DNA of 64,000 nucleotides from Scyliorhinus canicula (lineage: Eukaryota). How positions within the stretch are numbered: the first letter of the stretch is position 1; the number at the start of each line of letters is the position of its first letter. Location: the NCBI RefSeq assembly GCF_902713615.1, contig NC_052162.1, positions 114,818,742-114,882,741 of the forward strand. The letters run 5' to 3'. Under the pieces are notes generated by a model, which did no database searches, was not told the origin of the DNA, and worked only from the letters and a program-made list of their open reading frames with translations. Of the stretch, positions 6,761 through 53,219 are shown in pieces. Made by a program: the position numbers and the translations under genes.

Positions 6761-7354
6761 CTAATCAGTGTGACTGCCCTGGTGTCTTAGCAGCTCAGAT
6801 GAACAAATAAATCCCTTCCCACACACAGAGCATGTGAACGGCCTCTCTCCACTGTGAACCCGCTGGTGTGACAGCAGGTTGGATAACTGAGCGAATCCCT
6901 TCCCACACGCAGAGCAAGTAAAAGGCCGCTCCCCATTGTGAATTCGCTGATGTGTCTGCAGGTGGGATGACTGAGCGAATCCCTTCCCACAGTCAGAGCA
7001 GGAGAACGGCTTTTCCCTGGTGTGAACTCGCTGATGTTTCTGTAGAGTGGATGAATCAATGAATCCCTTTGCACACCGAGAGCAGGTGTATGGCCGTTCT
7101 CCAGTGTGAACTCTCTGGTGTAACTTCAGGTTGGATGACTTGGTGAACCCTTTCCCACACTCAGAGCAGGTGAATGGCCTCTCCCGGGTGTGAATTCGCT
7201 GATGTAACTGAAGGTTAAATAACCGAGCGAATCCCTTCCCACACTCAGGGCAGGTGAACGGCCTCTCCCCAGTGTGGCTGCGTCGATGAATTTCCAGCTC
7301 AGATGGGGCTTTGTATCCCTTCCCACAATCCCCACATTTCCATGGCTTCTCCAT
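6761..7354 (-). CDS. C2H2 zinc-finger protein ZNF-A1, 197 aa, 7 fingers, no KRAB/SCAN/BTB domain
   Basis: [13 protein letters not shown] start, 7 intact C2H2 fingers with TGERP-type linkers; exon-3 acceptor near 7704; exons 1 and 2 not found. Confidence 0.8.
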   Translation of the reverse strand: MEKPWKCGDCGKGYKAPSELEIHRRSHTGERPFTCPECGKGFARLFNLQLHQRIHTRERPFTCSECGKGFTKSSNLKLHQRVHTGERPYTCSRCAKGFIDSSTLQKHQRVHTREKPFSCSDCGKGFAQSSHLQTHQRIHNGERPFTCSACGKGFAQLSNLLSHQRVHSGERPFTCSVCGKGFICSSELLRHQGSHTD

Positions 7355-7896
7355 TTGGCTGGTGTTTATGTGACTCGCCAGGTTTGGGAATCGGTTGATG
7401 GCTTGGCTCACACACACACACAACACACACAGTCTCTCCCTGCTATGAATGGTGTGATTTTTTTTTCAGGCTGTGTTAAGTTATTTTCACAGTCAGTTAA
7501 CTGTAACACTCCCACTTGTGTGTCTCAGTGCTCTTTCAGTCACACTGATGATTAAAATCTTTTGAAGTCGTCAAAACAAACATTTCTCCCTCGAGACTCA
7601 AGGCCAATGATATTCAGGCCCTGTGAATCTGAATGTCTTTGGCAGATGCTGACATGATGTCTGGTTTGAGATTTCTGTCTGTAAATCTTCCTCTTTAAAC
7701 ATCCTGTAAAAGGAGTTTCCAAAATTAATTATCAGTACAGGATAGAAATTCAGAAAAGACAATTCTGTTTTTATGGAATATTGTTTTCCCTTTTGTTTCT
7801 CCCAAAACTGTAATTTTCCACCCCACACACACTCCCTCCATTCCAGCCAGACAAATAAATGTGTTAAGCTGTGGGAGGAACGGATGTCAATGTATT

Positions 7897-7992
7897 TAAG
7901 TAAGAAGTCTTACAACACCAGGTTAAAGTCCAACAGGTTTGTTTCAAACACGAGCTTTCGGAGCACGGCTCCTTCTTCAGGTGAATCCTGGT
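7897..7992 (-). mobile_element. Penelope-terminus-derived short element with a hammerhead core at 7949-7983
   Basis: Same sequence as the Penelope end at 47575-47660; minus strand reads CAC-CTGAAGA-AGGAGC-CGT-GCTCC-GAAA-GC-TC-GTG. Confidence 0.75.
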
Positions 7993-8338
7993 CACTCTCT
8001 CCAGGACATCCGCCCACGTCCCCTCCTCAATCTCCTCACCCAGCTCCTCTTCCCATTTACCCTTCAGTTCCTCCACCGAGGCCTCGTCTACCTCCTGCAT
8101 CACCCGGTATATGTTCGAAATCCTCCCTCCTCCAACCCACAACCCCGAGAGCACCCTGTCCCGCACCCCACGTGGGGGCAGCAAGGGGAACCCCTCCACC
8201 TGCCGCCTGGCAAACGCCCTCACCTGCATGTACCTAAACATGTTCCCCGGGGGGAGCCCAAACTTCCCCTCTAACTCCCCCAAGCTCGCGAACCTCCCCT
8301 CCACAAACAGGTCCCTCAACCTCCTAACCCCTACCCTA
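7993..8338 (-). mobile_element. L1-clade ORF2 C-terminal fragment
   Basis: DLFVEGRFASLGELEGKFGLP..FRYMQVR..LKGKWEEELG. Confidence 0.75.
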
Positions 8339-8339
8339 T

Positions 8340-9280
8340 GAGGGTCAGAGGGACCTTAATGTCCCTGTCCATAGATCTTTGAAGTCAATAGGAAAGATGG
8401 ATATGGTGATTCAGAACAGATATGGGACACTTCGATTAGCTGAGGTATAGAAGATAAGAGCACGGAGGTTACGATGGAGCTGTGTAAAACACTCTTTAAG
8501 CCATAGCTGGAGTACTGAGTGCAGTTCTGGTTGCCATACTACAGGAAGGATGTGATTGCACTGGAGAGGATGCAGAGGAGATTCATTAAGCATGTTGCCT
8601 GGGCGTTTCAGCGATGAAGAGAACCTGGTTAGGAGTTTCCTGGGAGCCGAGGAGGCTGAGGAGATATGTAATATGGGTGGCACGGTAGCATACTGGTTAG
8701 CACTGTTGCTTCACAGTGCCAGGGTCCAACGTTCGATTCTCCCCGTGTCTCCATGGATTTCCTCCGGGTGCTCCGGTTTCCTCCCACAAGTTCCGAAAGA
8801 CGCGCTGTTAGGTAATTTGGACATTCTGAATTCTCCCTCTGTTTACCTGAACAGCCGCCACAATGTAGCAACTCGGAGCTTTTCACGGTAACTTCATTGC
8901 AGTGTTAATGTAAGCCTATCTGTGACAATAAAGATTATTATTATACAAATTTATGAAGGACACAGCTAGAGTAGATAGGAAGAGAGCTTTCCCCTTAGTT
9001 GACAGGTCAATAAACAGTGGGCAGAAATTTAAGGTGAGGGGCAGGAGATTTAGATGGGATTTGAGGAAAAACATTTTCACCAGTGGGTGGTGGGAATCTG
9101 GAACTCGCTGCCTGAAAGCGTGGCAGAGGCGGGAAACCTCACAACATTGAAGAAGCATTGAGATGAGCACTTGATAGGCCATAGCATACAAGGCTATGGT
9201 CCAAGTGATTGGAATTCATACGTGCTCGATGGCTGGTGCAGAAATGATGGGCCAAAGGGCCTCTGGCTCTGCTGTAAAAC
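8340..9280 (+). mobile_element. Decayed CR1 3' region interrupted by a SINE (8675-8945)
   Basis: LEYxVQFWLPYYRKDVIALERMQRRF; KFKVRGRRFRWDLRKNIF. Confidence 0.75.
8675..8945 (+). mobile_element. V-SINE variant with GTGACAATAAAGATTATTATTAT tail
   Basis: V-core TTTCCTCCGGGTGCTCCGGTTTCCTCCCAC plus a tail shared with the short tRNA SINE; second copy at 40993-41282. Confidence 0.8.
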
Positions 9281-9287
9281 TCTGTTT

Positions 9288-9605
9288 TCATAGAATCCCT
9301 ACAGTGCAGAAAGAGGCCATTGGGCCCATCAAGTACCAACCCTCCAAAAGAGCAGCCCACCGAGGCCCAAGCCCCCACCCTATCCCCATAACCCCAGCTA
9401 ACCTTATTGGACACTAAGGGGCAATTTAGCACGGCTAATCCACCTAATCTGCACATTTTTGGAATGTGGGAGGAAACCGGAGCACCCGGAGGAAACCCAC
9501 ACAGACACGGGGAGAACGTGCAAACTCCACACAGACAATCAACCGAGGCTGGAATTGAATCCGGTTTCCTCATGCCGTGAGGCAGTAGTGCAAACCACTG
9601 TGCCT
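9288..9605 (-). mobile_element. HE1-type V-SINE with CR1-like tail
   Basis: tRNA-like head, V-core and TTCTATG tail. Confidence 0.85.
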
Positions 9606-10014
9606 CACTGTGTGTTATATGACACAGATTAGATTATTACTGATGGTTATGAAATAAAATACATTCATTATTCTTGTTTTGGACTGTAGTACAGTAGCTA
9701 TGTTATATATTTCCAATCAGATTTATAACAGAAGAGGAGTCCATTGGGCCTTTTGAGTTGATGCTGACTGTCTGTTGGGCAATTCTGTCAGTCTCGAATG
9801 GGTCCCATTCTGTAACCCTGCAGCACTCATCCAATTTCATTATTATCTCTGCTTGACTCCCCTCATAGGCAGCAAGTTCAAGGACATGATCAGTCACAAC
9901 CCCCTGTATCTTAACCAACCGGAACAATCCTATACATTAAAACATTTTCAGTCCAGTAATACAGACACATATCTGTCTGGCAGCCTGCATGAAGATTTTC
10001 AGGTACCTGTCCAG

Positions 10015-10080
10015 GACAGGAAGCAGTGAGCAGAGATCTGTCAATCAGCCTGAATCAGCACCTTCAGGAGAATTGGGAGG
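10015..10080 (+). other. Predicted 66-nt non-coding exon 2 of ZNF-A2; intron 10081-10249; exon 3 starts at 10250
   Basis: TGTCCAG|GACAGGAAGC...TTGGGAGG|GTGAAT and TTTTACAG|GATATTAG; module repeats at about 23550-23765, 38035-38272(-), 40735-40935, 45682-45918(-), 51433-51659. Confidence 0.6.
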
Positions 10081-10609
10081 GTGAATATTAGATACAGCAG
10101 AGTGAGAATGGAGGGAGAGTGTGTGGGATGGAGATTTACACCTTTTGGGGAATGAGAGAGGAAAAAATGTTCCAGAGAAACTACAATTGTCTGTTCTGAA
10201 TTTCTATCCTATACTGACGGCGATGGTATTTTGTAAACTCCTTTTACAGGATATTAGAAGAGGAAGGTTTACAGACAGAAATCTCAAAACGAAACATTGC
10301 ATCAACATCTGACAGAGTAATTCGATTCATTGGGTTCTGAATATCATTGGCCTGTCAATCTAGAATAACAAACGTTTGTCTGTTCTGTTCGGCTTCAAGA
10401 GATTTTAAACATCAGTGTGACTGGAAAAGCACCGAGACACACACACCCGAGTGAGAGTGTTCCAGAGCACTGACTGTGGAAAGAGCTTCAACCAGATGCA
10501 CAACCTGAAAAAACATTGCACCATTCACAGCGGGGAGAGAAAGTTCCCGTATCCTGTGTGAGACTTTAACTGATTGTCCGACTTGGAGAGACACAAGGAC
10601 ACCAACAAC

Positions 10610-11368
10610 ATGGAGAAACGGTGGAAATGTGGGGACTGTGGAAAGGGATTTAGGTTCCCATCTGTGCTTGAAACCCATCGACACAGTCACACCGGGGAGA
10701 GGCCGTTCACCTGCTCCGTGTCTGGGAAGGGATTCACTCAGTTGTTTCACCTGCGGAGACACAGTGTCACTCACACCAATGAGAGACCCTTTAAATGCTC
10801 TGACTGTGGGAGTGGCTTCAAAAGCTCTCGAGAACTGATCTCTCACCAGCGAGTTCACACTGAGGAAAGGCCGTTCACCTGCTCTGTGTGTGGAAAGGGA
10901 TTTGCTCACTTATCTAACCTGCGGAGACACAGTGTCACTCACACCAATGAGAGACCCTTTAAATGCTCTGACTGTGGGGGTGGCTTCAAAAGCTCTCGAG
11001 AACTGATCTCTCACCAGCGAGTTCACACTGGGGAGAGGCCGTTCACCTGCTCTGACTGTGGGAAGAGATTTTCTCAGTTATCCAACCTGCAGAGACATCA
11101 GCGAGTTCACACTGGGGAGAGGCCGTTCACCTGCTCTGACTGTGGGAAGGGATTCTCTCGGTTATCCAGCCTGCAGACACACCAGCGAGTTCACACTGGG
11201 GAGAAGCCGTTCGCCTGCTCTCAATGTGGGAAGGGATTCAGTCATCCATCCCACCTACGGAGCCACCAACGAGTTCACTCTGGGGAGAGGCCTTTCATCT
11301 GCTCTCAATGTGGGAAGGGATTTTGTGTTTCATCGCACCTGCTGAGACATCAACAAGTTCACAAGTGA
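10610..11368 (+). CDS. C2H2 zinc-finger protein ZNF-A2, 252 aa, 9 fingers (finger 2 has C>S)
   Basis: ATG at 10610 ([13 protein letters not shown]); open to TGA at 11368. Confidence 0.8.
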
Positions 11369-14483: not shown

Positions 14484-14499
14484 CGAATGTTTCACAATG

Positions 14500-15812: not shown

Positions 15813-16810
15813 TGTGTCTGAGCAGTAATATCAAAGAGCAGCAGCATTCCCATTACACTCTGGGTAGAAGCACCAACTCCAGGTAAATGCTCCCTGCTCT
15901 GCCCCAGATTCCATGGTCCCAGTCAGTGGAAGATGTAAAACCTCAACAAATCTCTGTGCTCAGGGAATCCCTTCTTATACTTTATTACATCACAAAGTCT
16001 ATGGAGACTGATTTAACCCAATCATTGCTGAGCTATCATTTGAACGGACCAATTACAAAGCCTGTCATTGAACCATCTGTACCCACCCAAACCACGTCAA
16101 ACTCTCAAACAATTGTCTTCCCCACGCTCCGTCCCCAGGACAGGGAGTCAGCATTCCTATGCCAAGCAGTGAAAACATGGTGGCCTTGACACCCAGGTGT
16201 TGTCTAGGATTCCAGGCACTCTTGTTTTCTCTGTCCTCTGGGAGCTGTTTATCTCCCTGTTCCCACACAGCAAGTTGTCTGTTCTCAGCTCTGCTCAATT
16301 TCTGCTGGAGTTTGGTCCCTTTTACACCTTTCAGATCAATAAAACATTTGGTCAGTGAAGACCCAAACCACAATTTCCCATCCTGACACCTGTCAACCAT
16401 TCTTACCCAGAGCGTAATCACAACAGGAATAAAAACAGGGGAAGTGCAACAATCAAATTCAAAATAAATCCACAGCCAGTCATAGAATTTAATTTAATGT
16501 TCACTAATTAGCAATAAAACCCGCAGCAGGGAGTCCCCCAGGATTCTTACAGTCCACACCTTGAGGGGGAGAACTCTCTCCAACCCCTCACTCAATTTCA
16601 CTCCATTATTTTCCAGTTCTGTTCTGGCTCCACCTGGGGTAATATCTACTTGATAATTTCTTCTCCTGAAGGAGCGCCGTGAGTTCTAGGTCACTGGTAC
16701 ATAAGGACAGATGCTTCAAGCAACTTATCAAGCATGGATGTAAAAGATTCCCCAGCTCTCTCTTCCCCTATCTAACTGGTGGACAGTTCTTACTCACTAT
16801 TACTTCTCAG
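15813..16810. repeat. About 1-kb segment duplicated at 28582-29550; contains an LTR-like part (about 15933-16372, minus)
   Basis: Near-identical by eye, with paralogous spurious ORFs 16065-16421 and 28818-29126; TG..CA ends, AATAAA and a purine-rich stretch just before TG on minus. Confidence 0.8.
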
Positions 16811-16824
16811 AGGCCCTTTATTGT

Positions 16825-17948: not shown

Positions 17949-17994
17949 TGGCTTAGACTTCCTCGTGATTTCTTACAAATCAGTGCTGGGCCAT

Positions 17995-18652: not shown

Positions 18653-19495
18653 TCACTTGTGACCTTTCTGGTGTCTCCGCAGGCTGGATGACTGAATGTA
18701 TCCCTTCCCACACACACAGCAGGTGAATGGCTTCTCCCCAGTGTGAACATGTTGGTGTGTCAGCAGGTTAGATGACTTAGTGAATCCCATCCCACATTCT
18801 GAGCAGATGAATGGCCTCTCGCCCTTGTGAACCCGCTGGTGTATCAGCAGGGTGAATGATTCACTGAATCCCTTCCTACACATGGTGCAGATGAATGGCC
18901 TCTCTCCAGTGTGAACCCGCTGGTGTGACAGCAGATGGGATAACTGACTGAATCGCTTATCACACTCGGAGCAGGGGAATGGTCTCTCCCCGGTGTGAAT
19001 GCGCTGGTGTGTCTGTAGGCTGCATAACCGACTGAATCCCTTCCCACACGCAGTGCAGGTGAACGGCTTCTCCCCATTATGAACTCGCTTGTGTGTCAGC
19101 AGGTTCCATGAGGTAGTGAATCCTTTTCCACACTCCGAGCAGGTGAATGGCCTCTCCCTGGTGTGAACCTGCTGGTGTCTCAAGAGGTGGGATAACTGAG
19201 AGAATCTCTTCTCACACTCAGAGCAGGTGAACGGCCTCTCGCCGGTGTGAACTCGCTGGTGTGTCTGCATGTGGGATAAATGAGCGAATCCCTTCCCACA
19301 GTCAGAGCAGGTGAATGGCCTCTCTCCAGTGTGAACTCGCTGGTGTGTCTGTAGGTTGCATAAATGAGCAAATCCCTTCCCACAGTCAAAGCAGGTGAAT
19401 GGCCTCTCCCCAGTGTGAATACGTCGATGAGTTTCCAGCTCAGACGGGAATCGACATTCCTTCCCACAGTCCCCACATTTCCATGATTTATCCAT
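18653..19495 (-). CDS. C2H2 zinc-finger protein ZNF-B1, 280 aa, 10 fingers
   Basis: Intact [15 protein letters not shown]...HQKGHK; exon-3 acceptor near 19866; intact exon-1 donor at 21243. Confidence 0.85.
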   Translation of the reverse strand: MDKSWKCGDCGKECRFPSELETHRRIHTGERPFTCFDCGKGFAHLCNLQTHQRVHTGERPFTCSDCGKGFAHLSHMQTHQRVHTGERPFTCSECEKRFSQLSHLLRHQQVHTRERPFTCSECGKGFTTSWNLLTHKRVHNGEKPFTCTACGKGFSRLCSLQTHQRIHTGERPFPCSECDKRFSQLSHLLSHQRVHTGERPFICTMCRKGFSESFTLLIHQRVHKGERPFICSECGMGFTKSSNLLTHQHVHTGEKPFTCCVCGKGYIQSSSLRRHQKGHK

Positions 19496-20481
19496 GATGC
19501 TGGTGTCTTTATGTCTCTCTAAGTTCAGCGATCAGCTGAAGGCCTGTCCACACATACAAGACGGGCAATGTCTTTCCCTGATCTAAAGTATGTCAAGTTT
19601 TTTTTCAAGCTGTGTAACACTTTAAAACTCTATCCAAAATTAGTGCACTGGAACAGTCTCAATCGGGTTTGTATGTCTTGGTGCTTTTCCAGTCACATTA
19701 AGGTGTCAACTCTTTGGAGGTAAACCAAACAGACAAACATTTCTCCTTCTCGATTCAAAGATCGACGATCATTGGGTCCTGATGAATTGAGTGACTGAGT
19801 CAGATCTTGACATGAGGTTTGGATTGACATGACGATCAGTAAATCCATTCTCACCTTCTCATCTCCTGTAAAAGGAATTTGCAAATGTCAATACAAGGTA
19901 GAACAAACAATCCTAGTTGCTATGCCACATTCCTTCCTCTCTATTTTTCATTCTTTTATGGTACCTGGGCTGGGCCACGATATTTTCCCATTCCTATTCG
20001 CCCATCAGAAGCTGGTTGTGAGCTGCCTTCCTGAAGCTCAGGAGTTGGACTCGACCATTTTGTCCATCAAACATTTTGCAAATCCTCTCCCACTCCCTCA
20101 GCTGACAGCCCAGCATGCGGGCACACAGTATTAAAACTAATGACTGGCCTAATAATCCAGAGACCCAAGTTAACGCTCTGAATTGCACCATTACAGACAG
20201 TGAAATTAGAACTGCATAAAAATATGGGATTAAGTCTAATGATAACCATGAAATAATTGTTGAATATTGTAAAAATCCGGTTCAATGTCCTTTCGAGGGG
20301 AAATCTGCTGTCCTTACCCAGTTTGGCCTACATGTGACTCCAGATTCACTGTAATGTGGTTGACTTTAAATGCCCTCTGAAATGGCAGAGCAAGCCACTC
20401 AGGTCAAGGGTAATTAGGGATGGGCAATAAATGCTGGCCCAGCTCACATCCCATTAATTAATTTTCAAAATGTACTTTATT

Positions 20482-20708: not shown

Positions 20709-20952
20709 ATGTACTGTACTGGAGAATCAGAATAATTTAGTTTGTATCTACAACACTGCACATCCCCAAATCCATCAAACATTTGGGAAAGTCCCCTCCC
20801 CGACTCCACTCCCTCGGCTGGCAGCCCAGCGCACAGGTGCATAAAGAGTACATATTACAATAGTAAAGAAAATAAATGTACTTTACTGGAGAATCTTCTG
20901 GGACATACCAAATAAAACTACACTTATTCAAGACATGTCCTACTTTATTATA

Positions 20953-21128
20953 CAGCACCAGGTTAAAGTCCAACAGGTTATTTGGGACTCACTAGCTTTC
21001 AGAGCACTGCTCCTTCCTCAGGTGAGTAATGAAGGACTTCAAATAAACCTGTTGGAGTTTAACCTGGTGTTGTATGGCTTCTAATTGTGTACACGCCAGT
21101 CCAGCGCCAACATCTTCACATCATGGCT
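20953..21128. mobile_element. Palindromic Penelope-derived element with a hammerhead core at 20988-21027 (minus)
   Basis: Inverted CACCAGGTTAAAGTCCAACAGGTT / AACCTGTTGGAGTTTAACCTGGTG; ACTCAC-CTGAGGA-AGGAGC-AGT-GCTCT-GAAA-GC-TA-GTGAGT. Confidence 0.75.
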
Positions 21129-21139
21129 ACTTTATTATA

Positions 21140-22280
21140 GTTTGCACCCTCCCTGGATTCACTTCCTTTGCTGCAAGTGACCAATTGAAGGTGAGAATGA
21201 GAAAAGAAATGGAAAGGGGGAGAAAAGAAAGTGTTTTACTCACAGATGTTGGAGAGAGGAGGATGTTTCAGTCTGTGAGGCTAGAGGAGCAGCAGCTTTG
21301 CTGGACAGACAGTGGAGGAACCTCCATGCAGCCATTGGTACAAATCCCGGACTCTGATTGGCTGGAGGACTATAGCGCTTCAAGTCCTTTACGGATTTCT
21401 ATTGGTTGCTCCGCTTCATGGCAACTATCAGGGGTGGCCCCAGCTCACATGGGGGCGGGGTGGACTTTATCTCACATTGCTCTGAGTTGGTGTCCAATCC
21501 GCAGTATCTTGCTTCTGTAACCACAGATATCGCTCCCAATGGAACTGTACTGATGATAATAATCGCTTATTGGTACAATTAGGCTTCAGTGAAGTTACTG
21601 TGAAAAGCCCCTAGTCGCCACATTCCGGCGCCTGTACAGGGAGGACGGTACGGGAATTGAACTGGTGCTGCTGGCCTTGTTCTGCATTACAAGCCAGCTG
21701 TTTAGCCTACTGTGCTAAACCAGCCCCGTGTGAGGGGACGCCCCTGAGTCATTGTGACGTCAATATAGTGACCTACCAGAATCAGCCAATAGGAATCATA
21801 CCTCTACGGTGACCCCCTCCGGCTTCCAGTGCGCGGGCCCCGAACGTGGACACGGAAGCCCCGCCCCCACCATTTGCTTCCCCTCCTCCAGGTTTCCAGG
21901 CAACTGGCTGACGCTCCGGCCAGAACGAGAAGCCGCTCCGTGATCTCAATGTCCTGGCCTGGAACTGACAATGGCCAAGAGAGAGGTGAAACTGCGCATG
22001 TGCGGGGGAGCGCCCACCCCATGACCTTCCTGCTGAGGTATTGACCAATGGCAAGTGTCGGAGGAGCGGAATGACTCGGGTCCTCCAGCCAATCAGCGCA
22101 GTCTTTGTGTCAATGAAGATTGAGCTTCACACAGACTGAAACCTCCTCCTGTCTCCAACATCTCTCAGTAAAACACTTTCTTTTCTCCCCCATTCCATTT
22201 CTTTTCTCATTCTCACCTTCAATGGGTGACTTGCAGCAACTGAAGGGAAAGGAAGTGAATCCAGGGAGGGTGCAGACTCT
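21140..22280. promoter_or_regulatory. Putative bidirectional CpG-rich promoter B with two inverted exon-1 modules
   Basis: Arms 21140-21280 and 22125-22280 are inverted homologs; ATTGG at 21357 and 21401; CCAAT at 22045 and 22089; GC box at about 21451; TGACGTCA at about 21755; GTTTCCAGGCAAC at about 21892; TGCGCATGTGCG at about 21993. Confidence 0.7.
21558..21727 (-). mobile_element. tRNA-derived short SINE inserted in promoter B
   Basis: Same family as 2292-2460. Confidence 0.85.
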
Positions 22281-24098: not shown

Positions 24099-24856
<758 letters not shown>

Positions 24857-24916: not shown

Positions 24917-25250
24917 ACATAGAATCATACAATCTCTACAGTGCAGGAGGCCATTCAGCCCATCGAGTCTGAGCTGACCCTTGGAAAGAGTACCCTACCT
25001 CGGCCCAAACCTTATGCCTGTAACCCAATAACCTCTCCTAACCTCTTTTGGACACTTAGGGACAATTTAGCACAGCCAATCCACCTAACCTGCAGATCTT
25101 TGGTCTTTGGGAGGAACCCGGAGCACTCGAGGGAAACCAACGAACATATGGGGAGAAAGTGCAAACTCCACACAGACACCCGAACTGGAATTGAACCCGG
25201 GTCCCTGGCGCTGAGAGGCAGGAGTGTGAACTACTGTGCCACCGAGCCGT
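24917..25250 (-). mobile_element. HE1-type SINE
   Basis: Tail, decayed V-core and B box; its head runs into the adjacent minisatellite. Confidence 0.8.
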
Positions 25251-26483: not shown

Positions 26484-26487
26484 GACT

Positions 26488-39115: not shown

Positions 39116-39860
39116 TGTCCCCTTAAATGTCAGCCATCTCCTGGGGAAACCAGTCCTTTAATTGTGAACATTAGGAAAGAGACCATCCTTTTAGCCAGAC
39201 AAAGAAATGTGTCAAGCCGAGGGAGCAAAGGATGTCAATGTCTTTAAGAGAGAGAGAGAGACCTGGGCCAAGGTTTGCAGAGTCTGCACCCTCCCTGGAT
39301 TCACTTCCTTTCCCTTCAGTTGCTGCAAGTGACCAATTGAAGGTCAGAATGAGAAAAGAAATGGAAAGGGGGGAGAAAAGAAAGTGTTTTACTCACAAAT
39401 GTTGGAGACAGGAGTCTGTGTGCAGCTCAAGCTCACTCAGGGTTGGGGAAACAACAGCTTTGCTCGGCACAAACCTCCATGTCCGGCTTCCGCATTGAGA
39501 CAATGGGGGAGCTCTGATTGGCTGAGAAACAGAGTCCTTCCGGTTTTCCTATCTTCCCATTGGTCAATACCTCAGCAGTAAAGTCAGCAGAAGTGAGCTC
39601 CCCGGCACATGCGCAACTTCTCCCCTTGGACATGCGCAGTCCCGGGTCTGGGGAGGGGGAGGACACCAACGGGACGGAACTGTCAGCCGGTTGCCTGGAA
39701 ACCGACTTGACAATGTGCTGGGGGAGTGGAACAAAGGGGCTCCCGTGTCTGCGCGGCCGCGCTCAAATGCATGACGTCACTGCGGAACGGATTTATTCCT
39801 ATTGGCTGATTCAGAGGACAAACTCCTTTGTGATGTCACAATGTGGAGGTTGGACAATGA
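39115..39860 (-). promoter_or_regulatory. Putative promoter C and exon 1 of ZNF-C1
   Basis: GTGAGT donor at 39396-39391; ATTGG at 39517 and 39559; CTTCCGG at 39537; CATGCGCA twice; GTTGCCTGGAAAC at about 39690; TGACGTCA at 39772. Confidence 0.7.
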
Positions 39861-40182
39861 GTTTCAGACTAAAACTTCCTCCTCTGGGCAACATCTGGGA
39901 GCAAATCAATGTCTCCCCCTTTCAGAAGGTCATAAGATATAGGAACAGTATTAGGCCATTTGGCCCATCGAGTATAACCCTTCAAGATGAAAAATCTGTC
40001 CAACTCCTCCCTAAATTTACTCACAGTCCCAGCTCCACCGCACTCTGGGGTTGTGAATTCCACAGATTCACAGCCCTTGGGAGTAGCAGCTTCTCCTCAA
40101 CTCTGTTTTGAATAGGGCAGCCGATGGCCAGTGGTTAGCACTGCTGTCTACGGCGCTGAGGCCCTGGGTTACTGTCTGCGTG

Positions 40183-40332
40183 CACAGTAAGAAGTCTTAC
40201 AACACCAGGTTAAAGTTCAACAGATTTGTTTCAAACACGAGCTTTCGGAGCACTGCTCCTTCCTCAGGTGAATCCTGGTGTTGTAAGACTTCTTACTGTG
40301 CTCACCCCAGTCCAACACCAACATCTCCACAT
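40183..40332. mobile_element. Palindromic Penelope-derived element with a hammerhead core at 40236-40270 (minus), inserted in a short SINE (40114-40475)
   Basis: CAC-CTGAGGA-AGGAGC-AGT-GCTCC-GAAA-GC-TC-GTG; inverted CAGTAAGAAGTCTTACAACACCAGG arms. Confidence 0.8.
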
Positions 40333-40571
40333 ACTGTCTGGAATTTGCACTTTCTCCCCGTGTCTGTAGGTTTCACCCCCGCAACCCAAAGATGTGCAGA
40401 GTAGGTGGATTGGCCACACTAAATTGCGCCTTAATTGTAAAAAAAATGATTGGGTACACTGAATTTATTTTAAAATTAAAACTGTTTTGAATTTGCTACC
40501 ACTTATCGTAAAACTATTACCTCTCATTCTGGAATGCCCCGCAAGAGGCAGCAGCTGCTCCAAGTCTACTT

Positions 40572-41305
40572 TATCTTTCCATTTCTTTTCTCATTCTGAG
40601 GGGACACTGGTGACTTGCAGCAACTGAAGAGAAAGGAAGTGAATCCAGTCTGTATGTTGCACACATTTTTAGTTCAGTAATATAGACATATTTCTGTCTG
40701 GCAGTCTGCATGGAGAATTTCAGGCCTCTGTCCAGTATAGGAAGCAGTGAGCAGGGATCTGTCAATCAGCCTGAATCAGCACCTTCAGAGAATTGGGAGG
40801 GCGAATATTAGATACAGCAGAGTGAGATGGAGGGAGAGTGTGTTGGATGGCGATTTACAGCTTTTGAGGAAAGAATGTTTCACAGGAACTAGAATTGTCT
40901 GTTCTTAATTTCCATTTGTGAATACCTTTTACAAGATATTAGATGATGATTTGCAGAAAAAAAGACTTCAGGATTTGGAAGTCACTTGGTTATGAGCGGC
41001 ATGGTGGTTAGCACTGTTGCTTTACAGCACCAGGGTGCCTGGTTCGATTCCCGGCTTGGGTCACTGTCTGTGCGGAGTCTGCACGTTCTCCACATGTCTG
41101 TGTGGGTTTCCTCTGGTTATCTCCCACAAGTCCCGAAAGATGTGCTGCTAGGTAATTTGGACATTCTGAATTCTCCCTCTGTACCCAAACAGGCGCCGTA
41201 ATGTGGCGACTTGGGGCTTTCCCCGGTAACTTCATTGCAGTGTTAATGTAAGCCTACTTGTGACAATTAAGATTATTATTATATCAGGACCTGAATATCA
41301 TCAGG
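40572..41305 (+). pseudogene. Remnant ZNF-C2: intron-1 piece, exon-2 module and start of exon 3; finger array absent
   Basis: Homology to the leader module of the other copies; continues after a SINE as GGACCTGAATATCATC, then jumps to sequence homologous to 12890-13660. Confidence 0.7.
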
Positions 41306-43842: not shown

Positions 43843-44456
43843 ATGTTTATTGTAATTTCCCAATCTACCAGACAACTTGCCCCTCAAACCATGACAGTTT
43901 CCTTCTGCGAGAAACACCCAGATAAATTAGGCAAAAGAACCCTGTAACCACCATAGCCCATCTTCATGGCAACATGGCTGCTTTGGGAACTAAATATCTT
44001 CCAACGTGCAAACACCTTTTCATTCTGTGCTCCTCGTCAAACTTGGAACCAGGTAATCGCAACGAGGCTCAAAAATGGTCAGCCCACCGAAAGCAGAGGT
44101 GTTAGACCGGCCAGTCCAGCAGAAAGAAACCCTCCAATCATCACCATTCACCAGATGTTAGAATGAACAAAATGCAGTCCTGGATGTCAGTGAGAGCAGA
44201 AACAATAACAACGGAGCCAACATCTGGAATTTATTGTGAACTTGTTGGAGTCACAACAGGTGTGATGAATCACAAAACCCTGCCCCACATTGAGAGCAGA
44301 TGAATGGTCTCTCCCCAGGATTAACTCGCTAGTGTCTCCGTAGTTGGGATGGATCATTGAATGTCTCCCCTGCTCAGAGCAGGTGAATGGCTTCTTCCAG
44401 GTGTGAACTCACTAGTGTTCCCACAGGGTGTATGGATATCTGAATCCCTTCTCTCA

Positions 44457-45323
44457 CTAAGAGCAGGTTAACGCCTTCTCCCCAGTGTGAACACGCTGGT
44501 GTATCCGCAGGTGGGATAACCGAGTGAATCCCTTCTCACACTGAGAGCACATGAACGGCTTCTCCCCTGTGTGAACTCGCTGGTGTCTCTGCAGGTGGGA
44601 TAATCGAGTGAATCCCTTCTCACACTGAGAGCAGATGAACGGCCTCTCCCCTGTGTAAACTTGCTGGTGTCTCTGCAGCTGGGATGATTGAGTGAATCCC
44701 TTCTCACACTGAGAGCAGATGAACGGCCTCTCCCCAGTGTGAACCCGCTGATGTATCCGCAGGTTGGATAATTGAGCATATCCCTTCTCACACTGAGAGC
44801 AGGTGAACGGCCTCTCCCCAGTGTGAACTCGCTGGTGAATCCGCAGGCTCCTTAAAACAGTGAATCTCTTCTCACACTGAGAGCAAGTAAACGGCCTCTC
44901 CCCAGTGTGAACTCGCTGGTGTGTTAGCAGGTTCAACAAAGTCTTGAATCCCTTCTCACACTCAGAGCAGGTGAACGGCCTCTCCCCAGTGTGAACTCGC
45001 TGATGTATCCGCAGGTTGCCTAACTGAGTGAATCCCTTCCCACACTGAGAGCAGGTGAACGGCCTCTCCCCAGTGTGAGTTTGCTGGTGTGACTGCAGGT
45101 TGGATAACCGAGTGAATCCCTTCCCACACTGAGAGCAGGTGAACGGCCTCTCCCCAGTGTGAACTTGCTGGTGTGTCCGCAGGGCGGATAACTGAATGAA
45201 TCCCTTCCTACACACAAAGCAGGTGAATGGCCTCTCCCCAGTGTGAATGCGTCGATGAGCTTCCAGCTGAGATGGAGCCCTGAACCCCTTCCCACAGTCT
45301 CTACATTTCCATGGTTTTTCCAA
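44457..45323 (-). CDS. C2H2 zinc-finger ORF ZNF-D1, 288 codons, 10 fingers (finger 8 H>Y); start codon is TTG, so possibly a pseudogene; about 3 decayed fingers follow to about 44235
   Basis: CAA at 45321-45323 gives TTG where paralogs have ATG; array otherwise open. Confidence 0.6.
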
Positions 45324-46004
45324 GGTGGGGGTGTCCTCGTGTCTCTCCAGGTTTGTCGATCAGTTGAAGCCTCGTCCACACACAGAACACGTGTACGGTC
45401 TCTCCCCGCTGTGAATGGAGCGATGTTTTTTCAGGCTGTGTAACTGGTTGAAGCTCTTTCCACTGTCAGTGCTCTGGAACATTCTCACTCGGGTGTGTGT
45501 GTCTCGGTGCTTTTCCAGTCACACTGATGGTTAAAATCTTTTGAAGACGACAGAAAAGCCAAACATTTCTCCTTCTAGATTCAAAGTCCGATGATATCCA
45601 GTTCCAAGGAATTGAGAGACTCAGTCAGATTGAGAGGTGACGGTTGAGGTTTCTGTCTGTAATTCCTCCTCTTCTAATATCCTGTAAAAACAATTTACAA
45701 AAGACATCACTGTCAGTACAGGAGAGGAATTCAGAACAGACAATGCTAGTTCCTAGAGAACATTCTTTCCTTGCTCACTCTCCAAATGCTGTAAATCTTC
45801 ATCCCACACACTCTCCCTCCATTCTCACTCTGCTGTATCTAATATTCACCCTCCCAATTCTCCTGAAGGTGCTGATTCAGGCTGATTGACAGATTCCTGC
45901 TCACTGCTTCCTGTCCTGGACACAGAGATCATAACAAATATGATCTGCAGTTGGCCATTCGGCCCATCGAGCCTGCTCGTCTATTCTGTGGGATCATTGG
46001 CTGA

Positions 46005-46590
46005 TCTATGTTAGTGACATTCTCCGTGTTATTGACCAGAGGCTGAGTGTGCTGACTCAATATATGTGAGCTCATGTGGCCGAACTGTAAAACACCATGA
46101 AGAGGCTCAATGATCCGGAGGAGAGAATCCTGAATATTGAACAAGATGCCTCCTCGGCAGAGGCAAGAATTTAATCATGGGAAAACCGGCTGAGTGGTAT
46201 GATGGACTCCTGGAGAACTTGGAGAACCGAGGGCCAGAGAAAGAACATCTGAGTCGTTGGCCTGCTAGAAGGTGTGGAGAGTAAGGCTTCCGTTAGGTTC
46301 TTCGAGGACCGGCTGCCACATTTTCTCAAGCTGGCTATGAAGCCTAGGTGTTTCAAATTAGAAAGGGCATCGGATCCTGTCTTTGAGGCTGAGGGATAGT
46401 TTTCATCCCAGGCCTGTAATCATTCACTTTCTCAACTTGAAAGATCACCAGAGGGTCCTGGAGACGGGTCAGGTGAGGTGGGACCAGGCTCCTACCTCAC
46501 CTGACAGTGACCCTGAAAATTGTATCTGACAACTCCGTCAAGTCTTTCAATAATCCGACTACTGCCTTGGTCTTCGCTAAATTCTTGAAG
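46005..46590 (+). mobile_element. Old L1 ORF1 fragment in intron 1 of ZNF-D1
   Basis: Decayed LENRGxRKNIxVVGLxEGVE; inverted homolog of 50143-50820. Confidence 0.7.
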
Positions 46591-46619
46591 GGCAAGGATT
46601 TGGAGGGATGGTTTGAAAG

Positions 46620-47535
46620 CAGCCCTTTAATTGTTAACATTAGGAAAGAGACCATCCTTTTAGCCAGACAAAGAAATGTGTAAAGCTGAGGGAGCAAAGG
46701 ATGTCAATGTCTTGAAGAAAGAGAGAACCGGGCCAAGCGTTCCAGAGTCTGCACCCTCCCTGATTCACTTCCTTTCCCTTCGTTTGCTGCAAGTCACTAA
46801 TTGAAGGTCAGAATGAGAAAAAGAAAGTGTTTTACTCACAGTCACAGATGTTGGAGACAGGAGGACGTTTTCAGTCTCTGTGATGCCCAGGTTTCCTCAT
46901 TGTCCAGCTTCCGCATTCAGACAACAGGGGAGCTGATTGGATGGAGGAAGAGAGTCCTTCCGGTTTACGAACTCTTCCGATTGGTCAACAACCTTCCTGT
47001 GCACGCATCGGAATCCGCGGTGACATCTCCAGGTTCTAGTCCGCTGGCCCGGCGCGCGGACACAGCAGCTCCTCCCCACTCATTGTTCCCCCTCCTCCAG
47101 ACAAGGTTTCCAGGCAACCGGCTGACGGCTCCGGCCAGAGCGAGAAACCGCTCGGTGATCTCCCCTCCCCCGGGCCCGGGACTGCGCATGTCCAAGGGGA
47201 GAGGCGAGGCTGCGCATGTGCGAGGGAAAGCCCACCGCCTGACCTTCCTGCTGAGGTATTGACCAATGGGAAGAGTTAGGACCGGAAGAACTCTGCTGTT
47301 CCAGCCAATCAGCGCGGGCTTTCTGTGGATGAAGATTAAGCTTCACTCAGACTGAAACTTCCCCCGTCTCCAACATGTGTGAGGAAAACGCTTTAGTTTT
47401 TCCCCCTTTCCATTTCTTTTCTCATTCTAACCTTCAATTGGTGACTTGCAGCGACTAAACGGAAAGGAAGTGAATCCAGGGACGCTGGAGACTCTGGAAA
47501 TCTTGGCCCAGGTCTCTCCTCTCTCTTAAAGACAG
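46620..47535. promoter_or_regulatory. Putative bidirectional CpG-rich promoter D with two inverted exon-1 modules
   Basis: Donors at 46839 (-) and 47379 (+); ATTGG at 46936 and 46980 flanking CTTCCGG; CCAAT at 47263 and 47305 flanking CCGGAAG; TGCGCATG twice; GTTTCCAGGCAAC at about 47107. Confidence 0.75.
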
Positions 47536-47537
47536 TG

Positions 47538-49560
47538 ACGTGGAGATGCCGGCGTTGGTCTGGGGTGGGCACAGTCAGAAGTCTTACAACACCAGGTTAA
47601 AGTCCAACAGGTTTGTTCCAAATCACTGGCTTTCGGAACACTGCTCCTTCCTTGGATGAATGAAGAGGAAATTTCCAGAACCATATATATAGAGACAAAG
47701 TCAAAGATGCAAGACAATGCTTTGAATGCGAGCATTTGCAGGTAATTAAGTCTTTACAGATCCAGAGAGAGGGGGAATCCTCGGTTAAAGAGGTGTGAAT
47801 TATCTCCACCAGGACAGTTGGTAGGATTTTGCAAACCCAGGCCAGATGGTGGGGGGTGAATGTAATGCGACATGAATCCCAGGTCCCGGTTGAGGCCATA
47901 CTCATATGTGCGGAACTTGGTTATAAGTTTCCAGAATCGCCGCGCGTCCTGCAGGCCACCTTGGAGAACGCTTACCTGGGGATCAGAGGCTGAATGCCCT
48001 TGACTGCTGATGTTCCCCGACTAGAAGGGAACATTCCTGCCTGGCGATTGTTGCGCGACGTCCGTTCATCCGTTGTCGCAGCGTCTCCATGGTCTCGCCA
48101 ATGTACCATGCTTCAGGATATCCTTTGCTGCAGTGTATGAGGTCGACAACATTGGCCGAGTCGCCCGATTATGTACTGCGTACCTGGCGGATGGTGTTCT
48201 CATGTGTAACGGTGGTACCCATGTAGATGTTCTGGCACATCTTGGAGAGATTGCAATGGCAGGGTTGTGTGGTGTTATGGTCACTGTTCTGAAGACTAAG
48301 TAGTTTGCTGCAAACAATGGTTTGTTTGAGGTTGCACGGTTGTTTGAAGGCAAGTCGTGGGGGTGTGGGGAATGACCTTAGCAAGATGTTCTTCTTCATC
48401 GATGACATGTTGAAGGCTGCGAAGAAGATGTTGTAGTTTCTCCGCTCCGGGGAAATACTGGACGACGAAGGGTACTCTGTCGGTTGTGTCCCGTGTTTGT
48501 CTTCTGAGGAGGTTGGAGCGTTTTTTTTTGCTGTGGTGCATTGGAACTGTCGATCGATGAGTCGAGCGTCATATCCTGTTCGTACGAGGGCATCTTTCCG
48601 TGTCTGTTGATGTCCGTTACGCTCCTCCTCGTCTGAGCAGATCCTGTGTACACGGAGGGCTTGTCCATAGGGGATGGCTTCTTTAATGTGTTTTGGGTGG
48701 AAGCTGGAGAAGTGGAGCATCGTGAGGTTATCCGTGGGGTTGCGGTAAAGCGAAGTGCTGAGGTGACCGTCCTTAATGGAGATGAGTGTGTCCAAGAATG
48801 CAACCTATTTTGGAGAGTAGTCCATGGTGAGTCTGATGGTGGGATGGAACATATTGATTTCACCATGTAGTTGTTTCAGTGATTCTTCGTCGTGGGTCCA
48901 AAGAAAAAAATGTCATTGATGTATCTGGTGTATAACATTGGTTGATGGTCCTGTGCTGTGAGGAGGTCTTGTTCAAACTTGTGAATGAAGATGTTGGCAC
49001 ATTGAGGTGCGAGTTTGGTCCCCATGTCTGTTCCGTGTGTCTGGATGAAGAACTTGTTGTCGAACATGAAGACGTTGTGATACAGATTGAAGCGGATGAG
49101 TTGCGTCTGGAGATTGGCAGTTAACGGTGTTGAGGGCTGAGGCTGTTGCAGCAATGCCGTCATCATGGGGGATGCTGGTGTAGAGTGCCGAGACATCCAT
49201 TGTGATGAGGAATGTTCCTGGTTCAACTGATCCATGGGTGCTGAGTTTCTGTAAGAAGTCTGTCGTGTCGTGACAGAAGCTGGACGTTCCTTGAACGATG
49301 GGTTTCAAGATAATGTTGATGTAGCCAGAGAGGTTCTCACACAGGGTCCCATTGCCTGATGCAATAGGCCGGCCTGGTGTGTTGGCCTTGTGTATTTTCG
49401 GGAGGCAGTAGAGATCTCCCAATGCGGGGAGTACGTGGGATGAGAGCACATAGGGTGCACTGAAGGTCTGGATCCAAAGTCTTGATCAGTCTGTTGAGTT
49501 GGCGGGTGTGTTCCTTGGTCGGAGTTGCGGGTAGCTGTCTGTAGTGTTCCCGGTTGTTGA
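47538..49560 (-). mobile_element. Penelope-like retroelement (RT plus GIY-YIG endonuclease), frameshifted, with terminal repeat
   Basis: LYCLPKIHKANTPGRPI, TMDVSALYTSIPH, LSTSLYRNPTD..FHPKHIKEAIPYGQALR, and WYIGETM read from the sequence at about 48090-48110. Confidence 0.9.
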
Positions 49561-49786: not shown

Positions 49787-50142
49787 GGGGGCAGCACGAT
49801 AGCATTGTGGATAGCACAATTGCTTCACAGCTCCAGGGTCCCAGGTTCGATTCCCGGCTTGGATCACTGTCTGTGTGGAGTCTGCACATTCTCCCCGTGT
49901 GTGCGTGGGTTTCCTCCGGGTGCCCCGGTTTCCTCCCACAGTCCAAAGATGTGCAGGTTAGGTGGATTGGCCATGCTAAATTGCCCTCAGTGTCCAAAAT
50001 TACCCTCAGTGTTGGGTGGGGTTACTGGGTTATGGGGATAGGGTGGCGTTGTGGACCTTGGGTAGGGTGCTATTTCAAAGAGCTGGTACAGACTCGATGG
50101 GCCGAATGGCCTCCTTCTGCACTGTAAATTCTATGATTCTAT
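49787..50142 (+). mobile_element. Full-length HE1-type V-SINE, preceded by a partial A-tailed SINE at 49560-49712
   Basis: tRNA head, V-core and GGCCGAATGGCCTCCTTCTGCACTGTAAATTCTATGATTCTAT tail. Confidence 0.9.
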
Positions 50143-51112
50143 GGATTTAACGAAGGCCAAGGCTGCAGTCAGATTATCGAAAGACGTGACGGGGTTGTCG
50201 GATACAATATTCAGGGTCGCAGGATAAAGCAACATAATACACCCCCGCAGCCTTTAGTTCCCTTCAAACTTCACCAAAGCCTCGATGCTCCATTTGTGTG
50301 GCTGCCGAAAAGTCCTGGAAGAAGGAAATCCTCACTCCCTCATGGAGCCAGGTCCCACCTCACCTGACCCGTCTCCAGGACCTTCTGGTGATCTTTCAAG
50401 TTGTGGAAGTGAATGATTCCAGGCCTGGGATGAAAACTATCCCTCAGCCTCAAAGACAGGATCCGATGCTCTTTCTAATTGGAAACACCCAGGCTTCACA
50501 TCCAGCTTGAGGAAACGTGGCAGCCGGTCCTCAAAGAACCTAACAGGAGCCTCACCCTCCACACCTTCTGGCAGGCCCACGACTCGGAGTTCATTCTCTG
50601 ACCCTCTGTACTCCAAGTCCTCCAGGACTCCGCCACGTCACTAGGCCGGGTTTCCAAGGATTAAATTCTTGCCTCCGCCGAGGGGGCATCTTGCTCAACG
50701 TTCAGGATTCTCCCCTCGGGATCATTGAACCTCTTCATGGAGGTTTGCAGCTCGGCCACAGGAGCTCACAGATATTGAGTCAGCTCACTCAGCCTCTGGT
50801 CAATCGTCATTTTCACCACCTCCGAGAGCGCGGGGTTGAGAAACCTCCTGAAGGTCAGGCCGCCATGTTGAAAAGGCGGCTCTGCCCCTGCTGAATCCTG
50901 CGCTCTTTTATCAACTGATTTCATAAGGTTCTTCGGCATAATCTTACCAAACTCAACCCTGAAGTCATTCAGGGATATGAGAACAGATATTGATTCAAGG
51001 ATGAGGTAGAGGAGTGCCGGACAATCAGGATAAATGACGGATTCTAGGCGGGTGGCACCAGAACCTGCGGAAAAGCAGTTACTCCCACACCCGCCTCGCG
51101 TGGATCCCCCCA
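50143..51112 (-). mobile_element. Old L1 5'UTR/ORF1 fragment in intron 1 of ZNF-D2
   Basis: Inverted homolog of 46005-46590. Confidence 0.7.
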
Positions 51113-52017
51113 GACAGATTTCTGATTGACGAGGGAGTCGAGGGTTCTGGGGAACAGGCAGGAAAATGTGGTTGGGGAGGGATTTCTTCACTCGAGGATG
51201 TGGTGAAGCTTTCGAATTCTCTACCCCAGAAACCGTGGAGCGTCAGTCATCAAGTATTTTTGGGACAGAGATTGATAGGTTTCTCGATATTGAAGATAGT
51301 GAGGGAGATGGGGGATAGTGTGGGAAAGTGGTGCTGAGGTAGATCGGCCACTGATCCCATTGAATGATTGAGCAGGCTCGATGGGCCGAATGGCCAAATA
51401 CAGCTCTTATTTATTCTGATCTCTGTGTCCAGTTCAGGAAGCAGTGAGCGGGGATCTGTCAATCAGCCTGAATCAGCACCTTCAGGAGAATTGGGAGGGT
51501 GAATATTAGATACAGCAGAGTGAGAATGGAGGGAGAGTGTGTGGGATGGAGATTTACAGCTATGGGGGAACAAGAGAAAAAATAATGTTCCAGAAATATT
51601 GTCTGATTTGAATTTCTATCCTGTCTTGAAGTGATGAATTCTGTAAATTGTTTTACAGGATATTAGAAGAGGAGGAGATGCAGAAAAAAATCTCAAAGGT
51701 CACGTTGCGATTTGACAGAGTCACTCAATTCATCGTCCTGAATATCATTGGCCATTGAATCTAGAAGGAGAAATGTTTGCCTGATCTGTCAACTTTAAAA
51801 TATTTTAAATGTCAGTGTGACTGGAAAAGCACCGAGACACACACACCCGAGTGAGAGTGTTCCAGAGCACTGACTGTGGAAAGAGCTTTAACCAGTTACA
51901 CAGCCTGGAAAAAACATTGTACCTTCCACAGGAGGGAAGAGACCGTACACGTGTTCTGTATATAGACAAGGCTTTGGCTGATTGTCTGACCTGGAGAAAC
52001 ACGAGGAAACCCAAAAC

Positions 52018-52635
52018 ATGGGGAAACCATGGAAATGTTGGGACTGTGGGAAGGGATTCAGAGTCCCATCTAAACTGGAGATTCATAGACGCATTCACAC
52101 TGGGGAGAGGCCGTTCACCTGCTTTGTGTGTGGGAAGGGATTCACTGAATTATCCAGCCTGAAGCCACACCAGCGAGCTCACACGGGGGAGAAGCCTTTC
52201 ACTTGTTCTCAGTGTGGGAAGGGGTTTGGTCGCCTATCCAACCTGAAGAGTCACCAGCGTGTTCACTCTGGGGAGAGGCCGTTCACCTGCTCTCACTGTG
52301 GGAAGGGATTCACTCGGTTATCCAACCTGCAGAGACACCAGCGAGTTCACACTGGGGAGAGACCGTTCACCTGCCCTCAGTGTGGGGAGGGATTTACTGA
52401 GTTATGCAGCTTGAAGTCACACCAGCGAATTCACACTGGGGAGAAGCCATTCACCTGCTCTCAGTGTGGGAAGGGATTCAGACATTCATCCACCCTGCCG
52501 AAACATCAACGAGTTCACACTGGGGAGAGGCCGTTCACCTGCCCTCAGTGTGGGAAGGGATTCAGTGATTCATCCAACCTGCACAGACATCAGCGAATTC
52601 ACTCTGGGGAGAGGCCATTCACCTGCTCTGATTAG
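52018..52635 (+). CDS. C2H2 zinc-finger protein ZNF-D2, 205 aa, 7 fingers; TAG in finger 8, with two decayed fingers to about 52754
   Basis: ATG at 52018 ([13 protein letters not shown]); exon 2 at 51433-51498; exon 3 from 51659. Confidence 0.75.
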
Positions 52636-53219
52636 GGGAGGAATTCAGCGATCCATCCCAGCTGCCTCGACAGCGGCGAGTTCATTTGTAGCCAATGTGG
52701 GAACTGATTTTGTGATTCATCACACCTGCTGAGACACCAACAAGTTCACAAGTGATTACAGGGTTGGATTCTGCTGTTATTGTTTCTGTTCTCAACTCAA
52801 TGCAGCTTTGGCATTTCATTCATTCTGTCATTTGCTCAGTCGAGAGGATCGGAGGGTTTCTTTCTGCTGGACTGGCCGGTCTCTTTGCCTCCAGTGGGCT
52901 GATGCTCTTTGAGCCTTGTTGCAAATACTTGGTTTCAGTTTTCACGAAGTTCACAGAGTGAAAGGATGTTTGGAAGTTAAAGGTTTATTAATTTTGCATT
53001 TCTGTTTGGAAGTACCCCAATGCAGACCATATTGCCGTTAAGATGGTTATATGGTTTCTCTGTTTAATTCATCTGGGTGGTTCTCACAGAAGGAAACTGC
53101 CAAGGTATGAGGAACAAGTTGTATGTGGTAGATTGGGTACTTACAATAAACGTTAGCCAGGCAAGCACGAGCATTTAAGGATGTGTTACATAGTTACATA
53201 AAATATAGATTCTTTCAAG

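Follow-up and report, generated by a model that had tools for sequence, protein, structure and literature searches.

The KRAB zinc finger (ZNF) genes of tetrapods lie in clusters that are mostly same-strand tandem arrays, and no KRAB-ZNF is known from cartilaginous fishes. Among fishes, cyprinids harbor a lineage-specific poly-ZNF expansion of their own, FiNZ, and such expansions have been tied to transposable element (TE) load (Wells et al. 2023, PMC10547256); the text of that study mentions neither cartilaginous fishes nor gene orientation. Outside the ZNF genes, the mouse class B Mup array arose from an inverted duplication that created a divergent gene/pseudogene pair, which was then copied many times as a unit (Logan et al. 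2008, PMC2533699). Here, we describe a 64-kb stretch of the genome of the catshark Scyliorhinus canicula (contig NC_052162.1, positions 114,818,742 to 114,882,741, forward strand), hereafter the window, to which all counts of motifs, open reading frames (ORFs), and arrays refer. It contains eight ZNF loci set back-to-back as four pairs, designated A to D, three of which (B, C, and D) enclose mirror-image cores. These loci probably represent an old, shark-specific poly-C2H2 cluster whose layout results from inverted and block duplication followed by decay, with the mirror symmetry as a historical by-product.

As in tetrapod KRAB-ZNF clusters, the window holds clustered paralogues with tandem C2H2 fingers, TGE(K/R)P linkers, many pseudogenes, variation at the DNA-contacting helix positions, and one large last exon, here predicted. 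It differs from them in the absence of a KRAB box, in a start codon placed within a former linker, and in the head-to-head arrangement of the copies on putative mirrored promoters. Cyprinid FiNZ genes are likewise a lineage-specific poly-ZNF expansion in fish, whereas the predicted catshark proteins have no N-terminal domain at all. A role as counterpart to KRAB or FiNZ proteins in TE control would be pure analogy. The cores share with vertebrate bidirectional promoters (Collins et al. 2007, PMC2077898) putative divergent starts separated by <1 kb (501 to 921 bp from donor to donor), a weak CpG island, and CCAAT and CCGGAAG (GABP-type ETS) motifs, with no TATA box seen in the cores. This likeness is one of sequence only, and the catshark halves differ in being inverted paralogues of one another, both equipped with a full motif set and serving paralogous genes. 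The closest structural precedent for a divergent pair copied as a unit is the mouse class B array. However, Mup copies are >97% identical within a 45-kb unit, whereas the catshark copies are ∼75 to 83% identical to one another, their pairing has been partly overwritten, and they belong to another gene family. In the literature searched, we found no description of head-to-head ZNF clusters or of the structure of a shark ZNF cluster. Within that literature, the head-to-head layout appears to be new for ZNF genes, with the Mup array as a clear precedent.

Four head-to-head pairs of zinc finger loci

A six-frame C2H2 scan and the stop-to-stop ORFs located seven C2H2 arrays and one remnant. The strand order of the eight loci is −,+,−,+,−,+,−,+, which bears out the alternation claimed in a preliminary description of this DNA. 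No additional array was found in the window, either by the scan or by tblastn with shark homologues. Each locus is named here by its pair and strand. Four of the eight are intact (A−, A+, B−, and C−; 7 to 10 fingers each) and four are broken (B+, C+, D−, and D+), in keeping with birth-and-death evolution. Assembly GCA_902713615.2 has records that match the products of A−, B−, and C− exactly.

The intact copies belong to two classes, which were defined by the gene tree presented below. A− (class 2) has an open 197-amino-acid (aa) ORF with 7 fingers on the minus strand at 6761 to 7354 and an exon 3 acceptor near 7704. Its class 1 partner A+ (plus strand, 10008 to 11368) comprises a conserved block at 10040 to 10141, exon 3 from ∼10250, and an ATG at 10610 that opens a 252-aa ORF (10610 to 11368) with 8 intact fingers plus a finger 2 lacking one zinc-binding Cys. 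In B− (class 2, minus strand), exon 3 spans 18653 to 19865, with an intact 280-aa ORF of 10 fingers at 18653 to 19495 and a leader reaching ∼19865. C− (class 1, minus strand, 36911 to 38282) encodes 9 fingers in an intact 252-aa ORF (36911 to 37669), followed by the leader and then the conserved block (38144 to 38245).

Damage to the remaining copies takes several forms. The B+ pseudogene (class 1, plus strand, 23554 to 24856) retains a conserved block (23565 to 23666), whose donor GT has become AC, and a finger array (24099 to 24856) with at least two frameshifts and one stop. The eighth locus, C+ (plus strand, 39861 to 40985), has zero fingers and retains upstream sequence only (40578 to 40985). 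This remnant consists of an exon 1 relic (39861 to 39925; donor GGGAGC), an insertion of ∼650 bp, a module tail (40578 to 40648), a conserved block at ∼40760 to 40862 (homology from 40726) with its donor GT changed to GC, and ∼50 nt of leader. Its acceptor AG reads AA near 40934, and the finger exon is deleted. D− (class 1, minus strand, 44235 to 45927) is a pseudogene with a conserved block at 45789 to 45890 and an array at 44457 to 45323; its ATG has turned into TTG, its frame stops early at 44457, and dead fingers continue to 44235. Finally, D+ (class 1, plus strand, 50145 to 52755) carries a conserved block at 51458 to 51559, exon 3 from ∼51659, and an array at 52018 to 52635 that starts with the ATG at 52018. 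Its frame stops after 7 fingers at 52635, before the usual last finger of the family, and one more finger with an internal stop lies beyond.

Mirror-image cores and predicted gene structure

The cores of B, C, and D measure 0.45 to 0.85 kb, and their two halves are inverted copies that each end in a common module with a GTGAGT-type donor (the exon 1 module). The B core (21278 to 22129) lies between the B− module (21139 to 21277, minus strand; GTGAGT donor at 21243) and the B+ module (22130 to 22278, plus strand; donor mutated to CTCAGT at 22164), and these arms are 92 to 97% complementary. Its left half is divergent, with two CCAAT boxes only; in its right half, two such boxes are accompanied by GCGCATG. 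Next to the C− module (39274 to 39414, minus strand; GTGAGT donor at 39396), the C core (39415 to 39860) contains, in its left half, a pair each of GCGCATG motifs and CCAAT boxes along with CCGGAAG; the right half is decayed. The D core (46861 to 47340) is bordered by the D− module together with a common intron stretch (46615 to 46860, minus strand; donor at 46839) and by the D+ module (47341 to 47539, plus strand; GTGAGG donor at 47379). It contains mirrored CCAAT/CCGGAAG sets (46932 to 46964 versus 47281 to 47313), with GCGCATG in the right half only. The D arms (46721 to 46821 versus 47417 to 47518) match at 83 to 88% and form part of a far longer palindrome that extends to the finger exons. 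A 22-nt exon 1/donor motif occurs four times at three or fewer mismatches, versus zero expected, and a fifth copy (D−) contains a 6-nt insert. The distances between the putative donors are 921 bp in B (754 bp minus a SINE-like insert; SINE, short interspersed nuclear element), 501 bp in C, and 540 bp in D.

Alignment of the six core halves in gene orientation disclosed a common plan: GCGCATG, present once or twice, is followed by a CCAAT box, CCGGAAG, and another CCAAT box (CCAATCAG), after which comes the exon 1 module. Two CCAAT boxes are present in five of the six halves and CCGGAAG in three. Five of the nine CCAATCAG occurrences and three of the four CCGGAAG occurrences in the 64 kb are located in the cores and point outward. 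Each half looks like a complete copy of a putative promoter, so that a core would consist of two mirrored promoters rather than one common element. GC content in the cores is 52 to 54%, and the ratio of observed to expected CpG amounts to 0.60 in B, 0.51 in C, and 0.66 in D, compared with 0.41 for the window. Relative to the usual CpG-island threshold of 0.6, C falls below and B is borderline; the three cores are weak CpG islands. The middle of pair A (7844 to 9941) is filled with SINE-like and other repeat fragments, and neither a mirror core nor an exon 1 module was found there.

These features amend the preliminary description in several respects. Mirror-symmetric promoters, around which it had placed all gene pairs of the cluster, can be recognized in B, C, and D but not in A. 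It had further described CpG-rich blocks of about 1 kb with inverted ends in B and D; the inverted copies are indeed there, but the cores are shorter and their CpG excess is modest. The left arm attributed to C is present, but so is a decayed right arm, split by the ∼650-bp insertion. Lastly, of the GTGAGT donors reported for both B modules, only the one of B− reads as such.

Several repeats lie in or near the cores. At least five members of a SINE-like family are scattered over the window (2282 to 2463, 21561 to 21727, 22280 to 22415, 27214 to 27371, and 63689 to 63870); one of them, of 167 bp, occupies the center of the B core, and another abuts the B+ exon 1 module. Short hairpin-forming repeat units (containing CACCAGGTTAAAGTCCAACAGG) occur beside or within promoter regions at 7895 to 7990, 20950 to 21075, and 40190 to 40290. 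An earlier note tied similar units to Penelope-derived hammerhead elements; at the gathering threshold, Rfam reports no family in the window. In C−, a 19-nt tail of the exon 1 module is found twice in one orientation, ∼950 bp apart (38340 to 38358 and 39295 to 39313), suggestive of either an insertion with a long duplication at its flanks or a partial duplication of the module. The tail of C+ directly adjoins the conserved-block region, which may be the ancestral compact form. We also considered the core and its arms as a mobile palindromic element. This is not supported: all seven module tails of this window lie within ZNF pairs, and the palindrome extends into the genes.

The gene is predicted to consist of one or two short non-coding 5′ exons followed by one large last exon. 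A strong acceptor, CTCCTTTTACAG/GAT (slashes mark predicted splice junctions), is found in all seven copies ∼350 to 430 nt upstream of the ATG. The exon 1 module ends in CTCCAACATCT/GTGAGT in five copies, and the exon 2 module of the class 1 copies ends in GGGAGG/GTGAAT. The GT of both donors is lost in the dead B+ and C+ and kept in the other copies, a pattern that, within these small numbers, fits real splice sites. The two 5′ exons are placed by the conserved donors only; their boundaries and the start sites are putative. Between acceptor and ATG, the ∼350- to 430-nt leader is composed of a dead N-terminal stretch and three fossil fingers closed by stops. Its first part in A− (7708 to 7601) matches residues 2 to 37 of the basking-shark gene model P0131 (47% identity, E = 1e-5), and the third and last fossil finger has a TGA in six copies where A− retains CGA. 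The frame opens 12 to 13 codons before the ATG in all copies except A− (about 37 codons), and the ATG sits in a former finger linker (M-EKPWKC). These traits mark the leader as what remains of a reading frame that was once longer; the fossil-finger part is 81 to 92% conserved.

A highly conserved element of the class 1 copies is the 100-nt block mentioned above, which is 95 to 100% identical in A+, B+, C−, D−, and D+, compared with 60 to 68% for the neighboring sequence and 66 to 81% for finger 1. Its conservation continues 60 nt past the supposed donor, it contains CCAAT-like motifs, and it is not exon-shaped. Similarly, the intron side of the exon 1 module (ATTGG and GGAAGTG) is 88 to 97% kept, better than exon 1 itself or the promoter halves. 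The block and this intron side may be promoter or feedback elements. A possible, though doubtful, extension of this idea is that the modules are not exons at all. The working class 1 promoter would then be the 100-nt block, ∼100 nt upstream of the exon 3 acceptor, and the core would serve farther upstream as an alternative promoter or enhancer, or be a relic. Besides the conservation pattern, this would accommodate an intact A+ devoid of any core, as well as the proximal CCAAT box, which lies only 74 to 125 nt from the exon 1 donor and would leave a very short exon. Conversely, the retention of both donor GTs in the less decayed copies and their loss in B+ and C+, the strong acceptor conserved in all copies, and the full promoter motif set of the cores argue for exons preceded by core promoters. 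Structured RNA was rejected as an explanation for the conserved modules, with zero Rfam hits in the window at the gathering threshold and fold z-scores of −1.2 to +2.2, no better than for shuffled sequence.

Probable copying history of the pairs

A gene tree of seven copies, based on the 700 nt that reach from the conserved block as far as finger 1, separated A− and B− (class 2) from A+, B+, C−, D−, and D+ (class 1) with support of 99/98; the class 1 group is a star tree. Approximately unbiased (AU) tests rejected sisterhood of the partners in A (p = 0.037) and B (p = 0.033) but not in D (p = 0.37). The promoter halves of D were also rejected as sisters (p = 0.015). The right half of the B core shares 81% identity with its counterpart in D and 57% with its own left half, and a left/right asymmetry is common to the B and D cores. 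Since the partners in A and B are not sisters and the right halves of B and D resemble each other, a class 2/class 1 pair with an asymmetric core appears to have been copied at least once.

The other pairs depart from this pattern. D− and D+ are both class 1, as is the C+ remnant (93 to 94% to class 1 blocks), so that left and right members form two clades in A and B but not in C and D. The D arms also share a private 550-bp segment (46031 to 46582 versus 50145 to 50804; 86 to 92%), whose TE-like end lies immediately upstream of the conserved block. Because D combines same-class arms and this private segment with promoter halves that are not sisters, inverted duplication or gene conversion within pairs probably also acted. 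The simplest reading is a mosaic of block duplication of pairs and inverted duplication or gene conversion within them. The proposal that the pair was the unit of amplification is thus partly supported: it fits A and B and the B and D cores, but it does not extend to D as a whole, a mosaic with class 1 on both sides, nor to C, which probably is class 1 on both sides as well. The alternation of strands adds nothing to the pairing, because a head-to-head unit yields −,+ in either insertion direction.

Alternatively, each pair might have originated locally through a separate inverted duplication, or have been homogenized by gene conversion between palindrome arms, with single genes rather than pairs spreading. 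The long palindrome of D with its TE-bearing private segment, the D−/D+ sisterhood left standing by the AU test, the class 1 identity of both C− and the C+ remnant, and the star tree of class 1 are what this scenario would produce. It is nevertheless unlikely: partner sisterhood was rejected in A and B, A− groups with B− at 99/98, and sisterhood was rejected for the D promoter halves, while the right halves of B and D are 81% alike.

According to the history that we favor, an ancient inverted duplication would have set two finger genes back-to-back, turning their TATA-less promoters of the CCAAT/ETS/GCGCATG type into the two mirror halves of one core of <1 kb. Blocks with the pair would have undergone at least one further round of copying (A and B; B and D cores), and inverted duplication or gene conversion would later have reshaped pairs from within (D). 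SINE and LINE (long interspersed nuclear element) insertions, deletions (the A core and the C+ gene body), and point decay would then have led to the present four intact and four dead copies. We infer both the order of these events and the function of the genes. The layout needs nothing beyond inverted and block duplication, and because these explain it, the mirror symmetry can be regarded as a by-product of the copying history. None of the four pairs combines an intact core with two intact genes: A keeps both genes but no core, B pairs an intact with a dead gene, C an intact with a deleted one, and D a dead with a truncated one. This argues against co-regulation as the reason for which symmetry was kept at these loci.

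Some observations weigh against this history or the gene structure that it assumes. The star tree of class 1 leaves most duplication events without a resolvable order, and the AU p values are only moderate (0.015 to 0.037) and refer to groups named after the data had been inspected. Moreover, the best-kept parts of the exon modules fall beyond their donors, because of which the exon 1 and exon 2 modules may be no exons. Finally, A− and A+ are intact in spite of their lost core, and either were silenced recently or are served by another promoter.

A 950-bp direct repeat is present in two successive inter-pair spacers (15815 to 16764 versus 28582 to 29517; 91.5%). It was not used as proof of block duplication, being far more similar than the flanking genes (∼77%), and is more likely a younger repeat.

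Predicted finger-only proteins and other features of the window

Across 46 finger units, the C, C, H, and H residues and the TGE(K/R)P linkers are invariant. The scaffold is nearly so, and the most variable positions are −1, 3, 5, and 6 of the helix (entropy of 2.6 to 3.2 bits), the usual signature of poly-ZNFs with diversifying DNA specificity. The predicted proteins are most likely sequence-specific DNA binders with diversifying recognition residues.

No effector domain was recognized next to the fingers. A hidden Markov model (HMM) derived from 27 tetrapod KRABs, run against every one of the 2069 ORF pieces in the window, reached an E value of 0.85 at best, and a SCAN profile, made from 2 seeds only, reached 0.84. 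With 109 non-finger N termini as queries, tblastn returned, outside the finger arrays, only TE reverse-transcriptase fragments and chance-level matches. In A− and C−, the Pfam matches were confined to zf families, and no family matched the non-finger parts of six shark homologues. In this search, FiNZ was covered only indirectly, through the homologue N termini used in tblastn, and no BTB profile was run. A KRAB-like tblastn match at 1745 to 2023 (E = 0.003) was rejected, as it corresponds to no Pfam family and scores an E value of 1.5 with the KRAB HMM. The ORFs, the KRAB HMM, tblastn, and Pfam agree with the earlier view of these predicted proteins as KRAB-less and made of fingers only.

Searches with the first 45 residues retrieved relatives at 60 to 81% identity in Mustelus, Heterodontus, Cetorhinus, S. 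torazame, Stegostoma, and Chiloscyllium. Three of the shark models start at M(E/G)KPWKC, the same linker methionine as predicted in the catshark. The atypical first finger is thus a mark of the family across sharks, and a stingray model has a similar one. Other shark models continue farther upstream, where they include one more intact finger and then a non-finger stretch (40 to 150 extra N-terminal residues). Such extensions could hint at an overlooked coding exon that splices an effector domain onto the fingers, but we regard this as highly improbable: the extensions read one DNA stretch in frames that differ between species and have no Pfam match, all upstream frames in the catshark copies are closed within 12 to 44 codons of the ATG (12 to 13 except in A−), and none of the 2069 ORF pieces is KRAB- or SCAN-like. 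A search with the whole B− protein retrieved only generic poly-ZNFs ranked by finger number, which says little about the family, and an exact cluster look-up of five window proteins gave no match. In two Mustelus relatives, the upstream neighbor, known by strand only, lies on the opposite strand.

With its fixed first finger, recognized in at least six shark species, this predicted finger-only family is a candidate for the means by which sharks may police repeat-rich genomes, and the paired layout provides a simple handle (core, conserved block, and two gene classes) for a genome-wide census. A bolder proposal, which we deem quite improbable, is that of a very large, old shark family of effector-less poly-ZNFs that spread as promoter-sharing divergent pairs. 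Its 100-nt block and leader would be regulatory, for instance as self-feedback sites, and it would be the cartilaginous-fish answer to KRAB/FiNZ control of TEs, without a classical repressor domain.

Several other features were noted in the remainder of the window. An intronless copy of a queuine tRNA-ribosyltransferase gene lies on the plus strand at 3324 to 4170. Its ORF at 3610 to 4167 matches positions 193 to 355 of Pfam TGT (E = 2e-66), and the N-terminal part, interrupted by a gap, is encoded in another frame (3324 to 3617). Most likely, this copy is a QTRT1 processed pseudogene. A tandem array at the cluster edge (5063 to 5634) consists of 13.6 copies of a 42-bp unit that are 95% alike and contain CCACTAGATGGTGC, which is similar to the CTCF core. 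The inter-pair spacers are mostly repeats. LINE reverse-transcriptase fragments (Pfam RVT_1, E = 2e-36 to 6e-6) were detected on the minus strand at 30265 to 31587, 32730 to 33805, and 55352 to 55993, and an ORF at 34909 to 35427 that matches ALKBH8_N is suspected to be of LINE origin. Four more tandem arrays, at 1 to 469, 25234 to 25904, 26481 to 26906, and 57191 to 57939, have periods of 32, 19, 70, and 34 bp, respectively. Two of these four are CpG rich, and composition alone would score them as CpG islands.

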